A DNA stretch of 64,000 nt from positions 62,001 to 126,000 of the forward strand of contig JALMLS010000255.1 of assembly GCA_038496445.1 (NCBI GenBank). The letters run 5' to 3'. The DNA is from Trichosphaerium sp. ATCC 40318 (taxonomy: Eukaryota; Protista; Tubulinea). Shown one piece after another: positions 57,081-64,000 of this stretch. Positions within the stretch are counted from its first letter, which is position 1. The number at the start of each line of letters is the position of its first letter. Both the position numbers and the translations under genes were made by a program. The notes beneath the pieces were generated by a model that saw only the letters and a list, made by a program, of their open reading frames with translations, ran no database searches and was not told the origin of the DNA.

Positions 57081-59208
<2,128 letters not shown>

Positions 59209-59519
59209 AAATAAGATATTAAAAAGGTATTGTCTTGCGAGACAATACAACAACACAATTTTAAAAAAAAATCACAAAGAGATCTAATGTAGAAAAAAAC
59301 CCAAAAAAAAAAAGCCCAATATAAATCTGTTGTTGCACGTGATGGTTACCAAAAATAAGTACATTGCAAGAGAATCATTTATTGGCTCTACAGCACTGAA
59401 ATCAGCGAGACTGAAAAAAATGTTACAGTTGGTGGCTTTTGTGACAGTCAAATCATTTAAAATACATTGTTTCGTTCAAATCTTGCGTAATTGGCTCTCT
59501 ATGGTGACTTTGAGAGTTA

Positions 59520-62500
59520 ATGAAGGTTGTAACTCTCAAAACCGTCAAAAAGCGTTTATTGAGCGCTCTTCATACAAAACAAGTACGACACTACGCCGTT
59601 AAAGGCAGTAGTGATGAAAATAGTGTATTTCTACAACAGGTATCGTTTTTACGCCCACAACGCCTCTACATTATCATATACCCACGTAAATAGGTGAAAT
59701 CGCTAGAACAAGCGCTTAGTATTTCAAAATTATCTGATTGGCACTGTGTCAAGTTAAAAGACGTTAAACAAGCTGGTTTCATCGATTTATTACGGTAATT
59801 AGAGGGTTCATGTGTAAAAAGCTAACAGCTTTTTTTTTTGCCAACAGCCCATACCAATACTCAGTTTTCCACCTTTTGTGTGCCGCTTATCCTTCAGTGA
59901 CATGGTACTTATGGGACTTTGGTATGGTGCCTTCTTGTGCAGTACAGATATCTCATCTTTTGGGTATTTAGAGAGCGTGAAGCCCGTATTTTGGAGAGAT
60001 GAAAGAAACGTAGTTCAATTTCTGGAAGAGGTATGTACTGACATTCTTATTTTTTTCCTGTGATTTGACAGTTGGCTTAGTATGGAAAAAGAAACTCTTT
60101 AAAGCATGCGATTGACTGGAAAAATATACAGATTGACGACTTATTATCTGTTGGTGGAGACTCTTTGATGCAGTACGCAACCAAAGGTTCAAAAAAAATA
60201 CTAATTTTTTTTTGAAACAAGGCATTTCTCGTCACGTCATGAGATTCTATGTACTGCCTTTCCGAAATTTAAATGGAGAGAATGGATAGTAGGTATGTGC
60301 ATATAATTGAGGTTTGTTTATGAATCTATAATTGGTTTTAAAAGCCTAAACGAAAAAGGTCGAGTTTCATTCAATTTTTGGTCTGATACAACAAACAGAG
60401 ATGACTTTGTTAGAGACGTACTGTGTAGATTTTGATTTCTATTTTGAGTTATCTAATATGTTGATATTATTAGGCAGAAGATGTTCTCGGTATCTCAAAC
60501 ATAAAGGATTGGTACAAGTTCACAGGGAATGATATATCAAATCTCAAAGGAAATGGACTTTTAGAAAGGCAAGTAAAAAAAGATCTGTCCTAATGTTTAG
60601 TTCTCATAGACTTATAGGTATGGGACTTTTCCTGCCCTGTTAAAAGCTGTTTATCCTGATTTTGAATGGGAGATTTGGCGTTTTGGTAATATACACTTGA
60701 CGCGTGGATCAACATGTTTTATTAATGTTTTTTTGTTTAATAGTACGAGCAACTCGTTTTTTTTGGAATGACACTGACAGTAGTGCGCAATTTTTAACTG
60801 TGGTACGCACACATCAATCGATATGCGTTTTTATCGTTATGCTTACCTTATCAAACAAGACAGAACAAAAATTAGGCATAACGAAACCGGATGAGTGGTA
60901 TAAGTTCAGCGCTGAAGATGTTCTTGCACTTGGAGGTGCTGGGTTCTTAAAGTGCGTCTGAATGTTTCCATTTTAATTGTAATAATTATGTATAGACGTC
61001 ATGGAGGATCTTTGCAAGAAGCCCTTGCATATGTGTATCCAAAAGAACAGTGGCAAGCTTGGAGATTTAGTATGATTTTTTTCTTATTATTTTCTTAAAA
61101 GTTTTTAATGTCTTCAGAGAGGGTCACGCGAAGCTTTTGGGCTGATGATGATAATATAATAGAATACATCAAATACGTACGTTATAAAAAAGGCAGTAGA
61201 AAGAGATAAATACGGCTGACATATCAAAAAAAAAGGTTGAAGGTGTTCTTGATATTAAAAATCTTGATGACTGGTATGGTGTTTATGTTGACGATCTCAG
61301 AAAACACAAGGCAGGAGGACTACTGTAGTAAGTTGGTCTTAACCTTACATGCATTAAATTGATCAATTATTAGCCGATTTAAAAGCTCTGTGAGAACATT
61401 ATTGGAGTATGTATACTCCGAGCACAAATGGCAGTTTTGGAAGTTAAGTGAGTATTATTTTTTTTCTAATTTTGGACTTACACTTGAAGGTGATGCTGCA
61501 CGATACTTTTGGTTTGATAAATATAACCACTATGTTTTTGTTAGAGAGGTATATAACTGTATATGGTTTTCTGGAAAAACTGACTAAAACAAACCAAGCT
61601 GGAAGATCAACTTGGCATTCAACAAATAAGTGATTGGTATGCCTTAACAACTCAGGAATTAAAGTCCATGGGCGCAATAGGGATCCTCAAGTGAGTAATA
61701 TAATACTTAAAGTCGCGTTAAGGATTTTGTTAGGCACTATGATGGGAAGATTGAAAACTTGATGACTGGGGTTTACCCTGACTATGATTGGAACTCAAGA
61801 TATTTTAATAGTTATTCAAGTAAGTTTTGTATCCTCGATTTTCAAGGTTGTATGGTGATCACGTGAGTTTATTTTTGTTGTAGAAAAGATACCATTTTTG
61901 AGGTTCACTAATGCGACGATAACAAGTGTTTGGAACAACACGGATGTTAGAAATCAGTTCATAAGAAAGGTTGGTTTTTTTAGCTCATTTCGTTTTCGGA
62001 CTTCATTTTTTAGCTTATTTTGAGCTTAGGTCGAGCATCAATTAAAAATAAATAACTTATCGGATTGGTATAAAGTCATTCCTAGAGATCTTAGACGATT
62101 AGGTGGTACTAGCCTTTTACAGTATGTCAAAATGATTCCCCCTTTTTTTCTTTTCTCAAAAAAAGTGTAAAACGTAGCGACTTACGCAATCAACAGGCAT
62201 TATGGTCAATCAGTGCATGAATTATTGAAGGACGTATATCCAGATCAAGTATGGGATATGTCTGAATACTCTAAAACTCTTACAGCAGTACCTCCAAACT
62301 ACTGGAGTCGTAAAGAAAACAGGAAGAATTTTATGATTGAAGCTGAAAAACAGTTGAAAATACAGGATCTATCTGATTGGTATCGTGTTTCAGAGCATCA
62401 TATAGCCATGTTAGGTGGAGGTAGTATACGTTATCACTGGCCCGAGGTTGTAAGGGAACTACATCCAGAGGTATCATGGGATATGGAGAGGTTCAAACAA

Positions 62501-64000
62501 ACAGATAAAAAATCAACTCAAAGGTATCGTTCAGCTTTCGTTTTTTGGTTCTCGTTCTGGTTCTTTCTTATTCGAGTTTAGATGGCTTTTACTTTCTCTT
62601 GAAGAAGTGTTAGATGGATATGATTTAGTAGAGGAGTATAAACTTGGAGTAGAAAAGAGTCAAGTTATAAAATCTATATCTCTTGATATTTTTATTCCAC
62701 AACTCAATGTTGCTATTGAATATCAAGGTCATCAACATTATTATGATATTCATGGTACATATGGCCCAGCTTCGGTTCAAGAGACAAGAGATCTAAACAA
62801 GAAACAACTTTGTAGCGAATACGGTAACAACCATACATCAACTCTGTTTTTGAAAAAAAACCCGCCCTAACCGAATATCTTTATCTTTCACGTGCTCACT
62901 GCTGACATGTGATAGGTATTACAATTATTCCTATTCCTTTCTGGTGGAATCCTACTGATAAAGAAAGTCTAGCTGCTACTATAGATTACTACTTGTACGT
63001 AGCAGAATACTGTCAACAAACCAACTTGTAACTCTTTTAGACCTGATTCGAATGCGACTCGTTTTCCTTACCCAAAGAATACACCACCTCTTCTTCTCAT
63101 GCCTGATTCAGTATCTCGTAAAGGTAAGAAAATGCAGACCATTAATAAAGGTAAACCAATCTCCGTAGTGAGGAAAAAGGAGAAGATGACATTGCTTAAA
63201 CATTATGATCCAAAAAAGGATTACACCGGTTGGTATGCTTGTCAGCTATTTTGTAGACTGCTTTTTGTTGATTTGTGTACAGGATGATTTCTGAGAAGCT
63301 TGATGGTATACGTGCTTTATGGGATGGCGTTGATTCGTTATACTCAAGATCTGGAAAGCTCATACCTGCACCAACCGAGATATCTAGCCTTTTGCCAAAG
63401 AATATTTCACTTGATGGAGAGTTGTGGTATGTATTATCTTGCTTACACGTGATTTTTTATTTCTTTAAAAGTTTATTTCTTTTAGGCTTGGTCACAACAC
63501 ACGAGAGACCTTACATGGTCAGTTGTATAAGAATAAACCAGATTGGAACGGTATGTGTTCTGAAGAGCATTGGTTTTTTTTTTTTTCATTCCAAAGTTGT
63601 AATGTTTTTGCTTTGTAGGTGTCAAGTTTATGGTGTTCGATGTTGTGATACCCAAATTACCTTTCAAAGGTGTGGTTTTAAAGTATGATTTCTTTAAAAG
63701 TAACTCGAGATAGAACGCTATGAACGCTTAAAGGAAATTATTAAAGAGTTAAACTTGCCTTGGGTTCAATGTGTTCAGGAGCAATTCTGTCACTCTCGCT
63801 CGCATGTATCGCAGCACCTAAGTTCTGTGACTTCTATAGGTGGCGAAGGAATAGTATTAAGAGATCCGCAAGGGATGTACATACCAGGTCGTCATGAAGG
63901 CATTCTAAAAGTAAAAGTGAGTGAAAACTTTTTTACAGTCGTTGCTTCTTTTTCTGCTTCTGTACCTTTCTTTGCCCTCCTAACATTTGATATCTTCAAA
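59520..64000 (+). CDS. Predicted mitochondrial protein: 8 tandem ~75-aa repeats, PD-(D/E)XK (Vsr/DUF559/RAP-like) nuclease, ATP-dependent DNA ligase; 3' end beyond window
   Basis: Manual splicing gives an open frame up to the ligase region: MKVVTLKTVKKRLLSALHTKQVRHYA presequence; repeats E..L.I..L.DWY...GG.GLL..Y...LL..VYP...W..W.F...FW.D..N; LDIFIPQLNVAIEYQGHQHY; SEKLDGIRALWDG, LDGELW, FMVFDV, GGEGIVLRDP, LKVK. Confidence 0.85.

Follow-up and report, generated by a model that had tools for sequence, protein, structure and literature searches.

A gene of Trichosphaerium sp. predicted to join a Trp-rich repeat array, a Vsr/RAP-type nuclease domain and a LigE-type DNA ligase domain in one polypeptide

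The end of a 64,000-nucleotide stretch of contig JALMLS010000255.1 from Trichosphaerium sp. ATCC 40318 (the window, that is, the whole stretch analysed) contains a run of short exons with the signatures of a repeat array, a nuclease and a DNA ligase. Do these parts belong to one protein, and what would such a protein do? A preliminary description of the locus had proposed a repeat-guided cut-and-rejoin enzyme for mitochondria. The elements on which it was built, namely the basic leader, eight DW cores, the nuclease block and the ligase motifs, were all found where it had placed them (Table 1). Their occurrence is far beyond chance, because exon 21 alone matches 2907 representative proteins at E <= 1e-3 and 84 at E <= 1e-30 (50%-identity library). 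The sequence is best explained by a nuclear gene encoding one multidomain protein, and we consider the fusion of repeats, nuclease and ligase to be real with high confidence.

The splice model was assembled manually, with the three reading frames, the GT/AG sites and the repeat periodicity as guides, and was checked against the repeat consensus. It predicts 28 exons at positions 59520-63916 of the forward strand, which combine to one open frame of 2907 nt corresponding to 969 amino acids with zero in-frame stops. The 27 predicted introns have lengths of 42-92 nt; 26 of them are of the GT-AG type and one is GC-AG. Splicing at the GC-AG intron yields LL-ER-Y, in agreement with the family consensus LLxxY. 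A GT donor 3 nt downstream of the GC donor was rejected. It would insert four residues against the family consensus and leave an intron of 38 nt, which is below all others. The ATG at 59520 is the first one in frame downstream of a stop. At position 63917 a donor GTGAGT opens a further intron and, therefore, the gene extends beyond base 64000. Pfam and database queries were performed with single exons and with homologues in place of the predicted spliced protein.

The postulated single polypeptide is corroborated by the relatives of the protein. Many of the family counts reported here cover the 150 best relatives, and six of these 150 (P0086, P0049, P0074, P0012, P0092 and P0029) show the full architecture of repeats followed by nuclease and then ligase. 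Two of them, P0049 and P0074, come from Cavostelium apophysatum as Trinity transcripts, and P0086 spans a transcript-sized contig. P0012 is an uninterrupted, intronless open reading frame of 3168 nt on a genomic contig of 10.6 kb, where it lies beside a ROCO kinase. The ligase tree did not resolve because the fusion ligases all sit on long branches. One clade of all seven fusion ligases was not rejected by the approximately unbiased test (p-AU 0.53). Homologue searches that started from the P0086 ligase region or from an alignment of the six fusions were swamped or word-limited and revealed no further fusions, and no Pfam domain was found in the C-terminal extensions of other family members. 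A literature search for the repeat, nuclease and ligase architecture or for this family returned no paper. This agrees with the preliminary description, which knew of no characterised protein of this design; the hypothetical homologues that it had allowed for do exist in other amoebae.

The repeat array consists of eight units of about 75 amino acids. Their cores read exactly as previously listed (SDWHCV, IDWKNI, KDWYKF, DEWYKF, DDWYGV, SDWYAL, SDWYKV and SDWYRV), and the family repeat profile matches all eight units with E-values of 1e-15 to 1e-25. Units 2-6 are encoded by three micro-exons each (59, 92-95 and 68-86 nt; phases 1/0/2), and exon 21 (108 amino acids) holds the last one and a half units in fused form. 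The preliminary description had suggested a search for paralogs with other repeat numbers and effector domains. Different repeat numbers were observed: the proteins found with exon 21 contain 4-23 matching stretches each, and a profile of the unit detected 1030 units when run on the 150 best proteins (median, six units). As to effectors other than the nuclease, the 150 best relatives showed none besides ligases and ligase relics. No repeat paralog was found elsewhere in the 64-kb window.

What kind of repeat is it? Pfam matched no family on the repeat exons of the window, and a PDB sequence search with the repeat profile gave nothing credible. Exon 21 was modelled with AlphaFold (AF2) using an alignment of 70 relatives (mean predicted local distance difference test score, pLDDT, 86), and the model contained about five helices per unit. 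Among solved structures no significant relative of this model was found (Foldseek E > 2; wide VIA search Z <= 4.5). SAM-like, integrase-N-terminal-like and winged-helix rows with Z 3-4.5 were discarded as being within the noise. The neighbours of the model among predicted structures come from dictyostelids, other protists, planctomycetes and a giant-virus metagenome and are all uncharacterised, and some UniProt and predicted-structure neighbours bear the name 'RAP domain-containing'. The only named family near the repeats is DUF4046 (PF13255), which is found in Bacillota and amoebae and has no assigned function. Two out of 70 repeat segments matched it with E-values of about 0.02, below the Pfam threshold, and a faint precomputed match lies on P0086; atlas neighbours by features and by shape carry the DUF4046 name as well, while the repeats of the window remained unmatched. 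No paper on DUF4046 was found. PPR, OPR and TALE arrays are built from tandem hairpins of 33-40 amino acids, whereas the unit described here comprises about 75 amino acids and about five helices and has no Pfam or structural match. The best explanation is a very large, uncharacterised and mostly amoebal repeat family whose usual C-terminal partner is a Vsr/RAP-type nuclease.

The nuclease-like block contains the motif quoted in the preliminary description. The family nuclease profile matches the domain of the window at E 1.7e-32 with every conserved residue present. In an alignment of 61 nuclease sequences the residues D, E, G, H and D are invariant, and K is found in at least 90%. Among the best relatives 102 of 150 possess the nuclease domain, in 89 cases at the C-terminal end. 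The fold was modelled on the homologue P0074:379-504 (AF2, pLDDT 90), the domain of the window itself being split by intron 22. The model gave a distinct top structural group with Z 9.2-10.3, clear of the next rows. This group comprised a Toxoplasma gondii mitoribosome chain, which is probably a RAP protein, I-Bth0305I, Vsr, the putative endonuclease NGO0050 and the RAP module of FASTKD4. Within it, Vsr, I-Bth0305I and NGO0050 share the fold with Z 9.5-10.3 (1cw0, 1vsr, 3r3p and 3hrl). Vsr, I-Bth0305I, DUF559 and DUF2726 proteins and the viral proteins with zinc ribbons and this nuclease have the motif pattern D ... E-x-x-G-x-x-H ... D-x-x-K in common with the family; in the repeat family the residue following E-Y is mostly Q. 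The earlier assignment to the RAP/PD-(D/E)xK type therefore stands at the level of fold and superfamily. At the level of sequence the RAP label fails: Pfam RAP (PF08373), FAST_1 and FAST_2 were unmatched in the window exons, in 10 full-length homologues and in the 61 nuclease segments. DUF2726 (PF10881) matched 19 of the 61 family nuclease segments at E < 0.1 (best 4.6e-6), mostly under the gathering score, and did not match exon 22 of the window alone. PDB sequence searches with the nuclease exon and the nuclease profile revealed nothing credible.

The catalytic Asp and His of Vsr are D51 and H69. Their equivalence to residues of the family was taken from the structural match rather than from a residue-level superposition. 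The family keeps both residues and, consequently, nuclease activity is likely. In FASTKD4, which has been reported to be inactive (PMC11879112), the partner of the Asp is an Asn instead of the His.

The ligase motifs I (KLDG), III (DGELW), IIIa (FMVFD), IV (EGIVLR) and V (LKVK) are intact. Pfam PF01068 matches exon 28 with E 3e-7 and is the sole Pfam match among the single exons of the window. The best solved matches of exons 25 and 28 are 4d05, 6gdr and 8u6x, which we take to be bacterial LigE enzymes; LIG4 and LIG3 appear only at E > 0.3. Bacterial and protist proteins of the PF01068+PF14743 type share 36-41% identity with the domain. Thus, the ligase is LigE-like and not LIG1/3/4-like, as had been proposed. 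The likeness extends to AvLigE of Adineta vaga and to ligase K, the kinetoplastid ligase K enzymes being mitochondrial. The minimal stand-alone form typical of LigE was not found here; the ligase begins at about amino acid 800 of a protein of more than 969 residues. LigE-type ligases are documented in eukaryotes including Amoebozoa, with added domains there too, and the related ligase K occurs in kinetoplastids (PMC10665377). The known additions to LigE are a leader peptide, PBZ, WGR, SAM and FHA and never a nuclease with a repeat array. The fusion ligases differ further by their long branches and by several catalytically dead members. Other LigE-type ligases (P0156-P0160, P0185, P0240 and P0265) carry WGR (many, including planctomycetes), SAM, FHA (Emiliania) or PBZ (rotifers), and the LigE-type ligase is a module that is often re-used. 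Bacterial LigD combines a ligase, a polymerase and a 3'-phosphoesterase in one chain. As a precedent, it shows that a single polypeptide can hold an ATP-dependent ligase together with a nuclease for end processing, but its nuclease fold, ligase clade and partners (Ku) differ and it has no repeat array.

A basic, acid-free N-terminus ending in VRHY-A had been described, and it is present in amino acids 1-40 of the predicted protein. The first 25 residues contain seven K/R and no D/E, and the first acidic residue does not occur before position 32. VRHY-A occupies residues 22-26, and residues 23-26 correspond to the presequence cleavage pattern R-x-Y↓A. Relatives such as P0010, P0015, P0037 and P0044 begin with typical leaders rich in Arg and Ser. 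The mitochondrion is the likeliest compartment because of the acid-free basic leader and the similar leaders of many relatives. On the basis of leader composition and the R-x-Y↓A string, we give the mitochondrial location an even chance.

For the function, we tentatively favour an array-directed cut-and-reseal protein for DNA repair or recombination in mitochondria, with a probability of roughly 0.4 for the whole chain. The anatomy, the fold classes, the catalytic residues and the recurrence of the fusion are shown by the data, and the steps of targeting, cutting and resealing are inferred. The repeat array would bring the protein to a given site or structure in nucleic acid, and the nuclease would nick or cut at the site chosen by the array. 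The ligase, adenylated at Lys820, would reseal a 3'-OH/5'-phosphate nick in duplex DNA, and the protein would thereby serve site-directed DNA repair or recombination. In this subfamily a LigE-type ligase has been added behind the nuclease. A bolder version holds that the 75-residue Trp-rich units are new modular nucleic-acid-reading repeats with a fixed number of bases per unit, that amoebae would employ families of such units to aim a Vsr-type nuclease at chosen sites, and that this member would be a natural, self-contained and sequence-directed nick-and-reseal enzyme of mitochondrial DNA; we regard it as rather improbable.

DNA appears to be a somewhat better candidate than RNA as the substrate. 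It is favoured because LigE seals nicked duplex DNA, because the nuclease has its Asp/His pair as in the DNA enzyme Vsr, and because the sequences nearest to the nuclease are modules of viral DNA enzymes. Viral contigs contain 485 relatives of the nuclease module, and these viral relatives are 30-46% identical. Their partners upstream of the nuclease are treble-clef zinc-ribbon arrays (DUF4379/DUF723) and once a D5-type primase-helicase (e.g. L012:2705-4237 and L007:1106-4258). As zinc ribbons or a primase precede the viral nuclease, the amoebal Trp repeats hold the place of a DNA-recognition module. Vsr and the viral nucleases stand alone or behind zinc ribbons or a primase, whereas here a Trp-repeat array stands before the nuclease and a ligase after it. 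Contigs of phages and giant viruses (IMG/VR L003-L082) commonly contain this viral form of the module, which has the motif EY[QHN]Gx[HQ]H. A contig of 6.9 kb filed as viral encodes four Trp-rich repeats and the nuclease (L074:65-1273). It is the sole viral contig with Trp repeats; either a giant virus carries a copy of the amoebal family, or the contig is a piece of a eukaryotic genome that was misfiled.

Several observations weigh against a mitochondrial cut-and-reseal protein. The splice junctions of the gene are predicted from sequence alone. The window ends before the LigE-type oligonucleotide/oligosaccharide-binding domain (PF14743, motif VI), and the ligase seen is the nucleotidyltransferase part only; P0049 has a weak PF14743 match (E 9e-4), and the remaining fusion homologues end in a short, divergent segment which aligns with it. 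In the fusion homologues P0012, P0092 and P0029 the motif I lysine is lost along with parts of motifs IV and V, and in P0145, P0027 and P0023 the ligase domain is reduced to its first ~60 residues. Ligation therefore cannot be the point in much of the subfamily, in part of which the ligase module is decaying; the ligase of the window copy is among the intact ones. Nucleic-acid binding by the repeats is without support from homology because the unit has no solved relative. In addition, pI values of 7.8 for the repeat array and 4.5 for the nuclease domain make the former nearly neutral and the latter acidic. RAP-type domains act on RNA, or bind it uncut. With regard to the compartment, only about a fifth of the Met-starting relatives (28 of 140) have acid-free leaders, although many of these Met starts are probably truncated. 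Furthermore, members of the family are found in bacteria and giant viruses as well, where mitochondria are absent.

How do the alternatives compare? An organellar RNA-processing factor of the FASTK/OPR-RAP type is unlikely but has the most to offer among them. Its repeats would bind a mitochondrial transcript, which the RAP-like domain would cut or hold, and the ligase would be an accessory nick- or end-binding or RNA-joining module. The nuclease is of the Vsr/RAP kind and, therefore, the design parallels that of FASTK and OPR-RAP/HPR-RAP proteins, with an import-like leader, a long helical array and, towards the C-terminus, a small PD-(D/E)xK domain which is Vsr-like. Expansion into many paralogs with presequence-like leaders is a habit of the PPR, OPR and FASTK families. 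The fold is equally near to the RAP domains of mitoribosome-associated proteins, FASTKD4 and plant chloroplast RAP proteins; the P0074 nuclease model reached Z 9.2 with FASTKD4 and Z 8-10 with mitoribosome chains of T. gondii and Tetrahymena, which are probably RAP proteins. RAP proteins have been reported as undetectable in Amoebozoa, which leaves the RAP niche open there (PMC8190603). The dead ligases of several fusion homologues would also fit an RNA factor. However, LigE and the nearest solved relatives of the ligase seal DNA nicks, and the closest sequence relatives of the nuclease follow zinc ribbons or a primase in viral DNA enzymes. Pfam RAP, FAST_1 and FAST_2 are not matched, and the catalytic Asp and His are kept as in Vsr and unlike in FASTKD4. 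The repeat unit has 75 amino acids and five helices where those families have hairpins of 35-40 amino acids, and none of them contains a DNA ligase. The protein is thus of a FASTK/OPR-RAP-like design which fails the sequence definitions of these families and uses a different repeat.

Rather less probable is a nuclear DNA-repair ligase with a targeting or processing module, modelled on the LigE-type break repair of bdelloid rotifers and Mortierella. Here the linker in front of the ligase would be a nuclear signal and the leader no presequence. Eukaryotic LigE enzymes with PBZ, WGR, SAM and FHA exist, and the rotifer enzyme acts in nuclear repair. The linker is rich in K/R and might equally act as a nuclear signal. 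Against this stand the presequence-like composition of the N-terminus with its R-x-Y↓A string, the Arg/Ser-rich leaders of the relatives named above and the absence of the usual damage-sensing domains.

It is very unlikely that the locus yields two products, with intron 23 being retained or no intron, so that a protein of repeats and nuclease would be followed by a separate small LigE starting from a Met in exon 24. The stop reached upon retention lies 12 codons past the splice site and 26 residues after the conserved WW. It coincides with the usual end of family members, because the nuclease is C-terminal in most of the relatives that carry it, 89 of 102. Exon 24 also contains in-frame Met codons. 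Splicing from 62994 to 63041, however, gives ...SLAATIDYYL-PD... and restores the family consensus SLxxxI....PD. The donor and acceptor of the intron resemble the other sites of the gene, only about 70 nt would remain for a promoter, and six homologues carry the fusion on one open reading frame. Retention of intron 23 could give a nuclease-only isoform, in which case one gene would make both forms.

A selfish or defensive DNA-targeting nuclease, which would be homing-endonuclease-like or directed against viruses or endosymbionts of amoebae and whose ligase would limit self-damage, is highly improbable, since a homing endonuclease as the best single structural match, the abundance of the nuclease module in phages and giant viruses and the repeats plus nuclease on contig L074 are opposed by 27 spliceosomal introns with conserved phases, by a position among ordinary genes without flanking repeats and without intron or intein context, and by leaders which resemble import signals.

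Table 1. Positions in the window of the predicted gene, its domains and selected residues and introns.
Feature	Position	Strand	Details
Whole gene to window end	59520..64000	+	28 exons, 969 codons, 3' incomplete
Exon 1, basic leader, candidate mitochondrial presequence	59520..59639	+	aa 1-40, pI 10.4
Eight ~75-aa Trp-rich helical repeats, exons 2-21	59694..62523	+	aa 41-644
Repeat unit 1	about 59694-59921	+	
Repeat unit 2	about 59972-60292	+	
Repeat unit 3	about 60359-60685	+	
Sole GC-AG intron of the gene	60569..60617	+	donor AG/GCAAGT (perfect)
Repeat unit 4	about 60744-61069	+	
Repeat unit 5	about 61118-61447	+	
Repeat unit 6	about 61490-61819	+	
Repeat unit 7	about 61884-62278	+	
Repeat unit 8	about 62279-62523	+	
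Vsr/DUF559/DUF2726/RAP-type PD-(D/E)xK nuclease domain, exons 22-23	62582..62994	+	aa 645-751
D679	62685-62687	+	conserved nuclease residue
E690	62718-62720	+	conserved nuclease residue
H696	62736-62738	+	conserved nuclease residue
D714	62790-62792	+	conserved nuclease residue
K717	62799-62801	+	conserved nuclease residue
Intron 23, 46 nt	62995..63040	+	donor GTACGT, acceptor TTTTAG; retention leads to stop at 63029-63031
Exon 24, basic linker into N-terminal lead-in of ligase	63041..63232	+	aa 752-815, pI 10.2
LigE-type ATP-dependent DNA ligase nucleotidyltransferase domain, exons 25-28	63283..63916	+	aa 816-969
Motif I Lys820	63296-63298	+	KLDG
aa, amino acids; pI, isoelectric point.

The upstream neighbour lies on the same strand and ends at 59208, about 310 nt before the ATG at 59520. 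Its last exon (59002-59208) encodes a hydrophobic C-terminus resembling that of a membrane protein. The palindrome CACGTG occurs in 61 copies in the whole window compared with about 10 expected, a number reached in 0 of 100 shuffles. Four copies lie in or near the gene, all of them non-coding, at 59336 (184 nt upstream of the ATG) and at 61860, 62889 and 63446 (introns 18, 22 and 25).

Helical arrays which guide a small nuclease, as in PPR, OPR-RAP and FASTK proteins, are the way in which eukaryotes manage organelle genomes. A family of thousands of proteins may fill the RAP role in Amoebozoa with a different repeat of structurally unknown type, and the nuclease of the present gene retains the complete set of Vsr-type catalytic residues. 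The fused LigE ligase is the first hint of a target of this family and points to DNA transactions besides RNA processing. The three-part design recurs in other amoebae, and it is a credible candidate for a targeted DNA nick-and-seal enzyme. If nicking and resealing of mitochondrial DNA is true, it would represent a design principle without a characterised counterpart. Should the repeats read sequence, they would constitute a novel recognition code, and the protein would be a cut-and-rejoin enzyme of natural origin with use as a tool; should they not, the protein would still be a new home for the horizontally mobile LigE in eukaryotes. For the amoebae themselves, the fusion protein is a candidate component of their poorly known mitochondrial DNA repair machinery.

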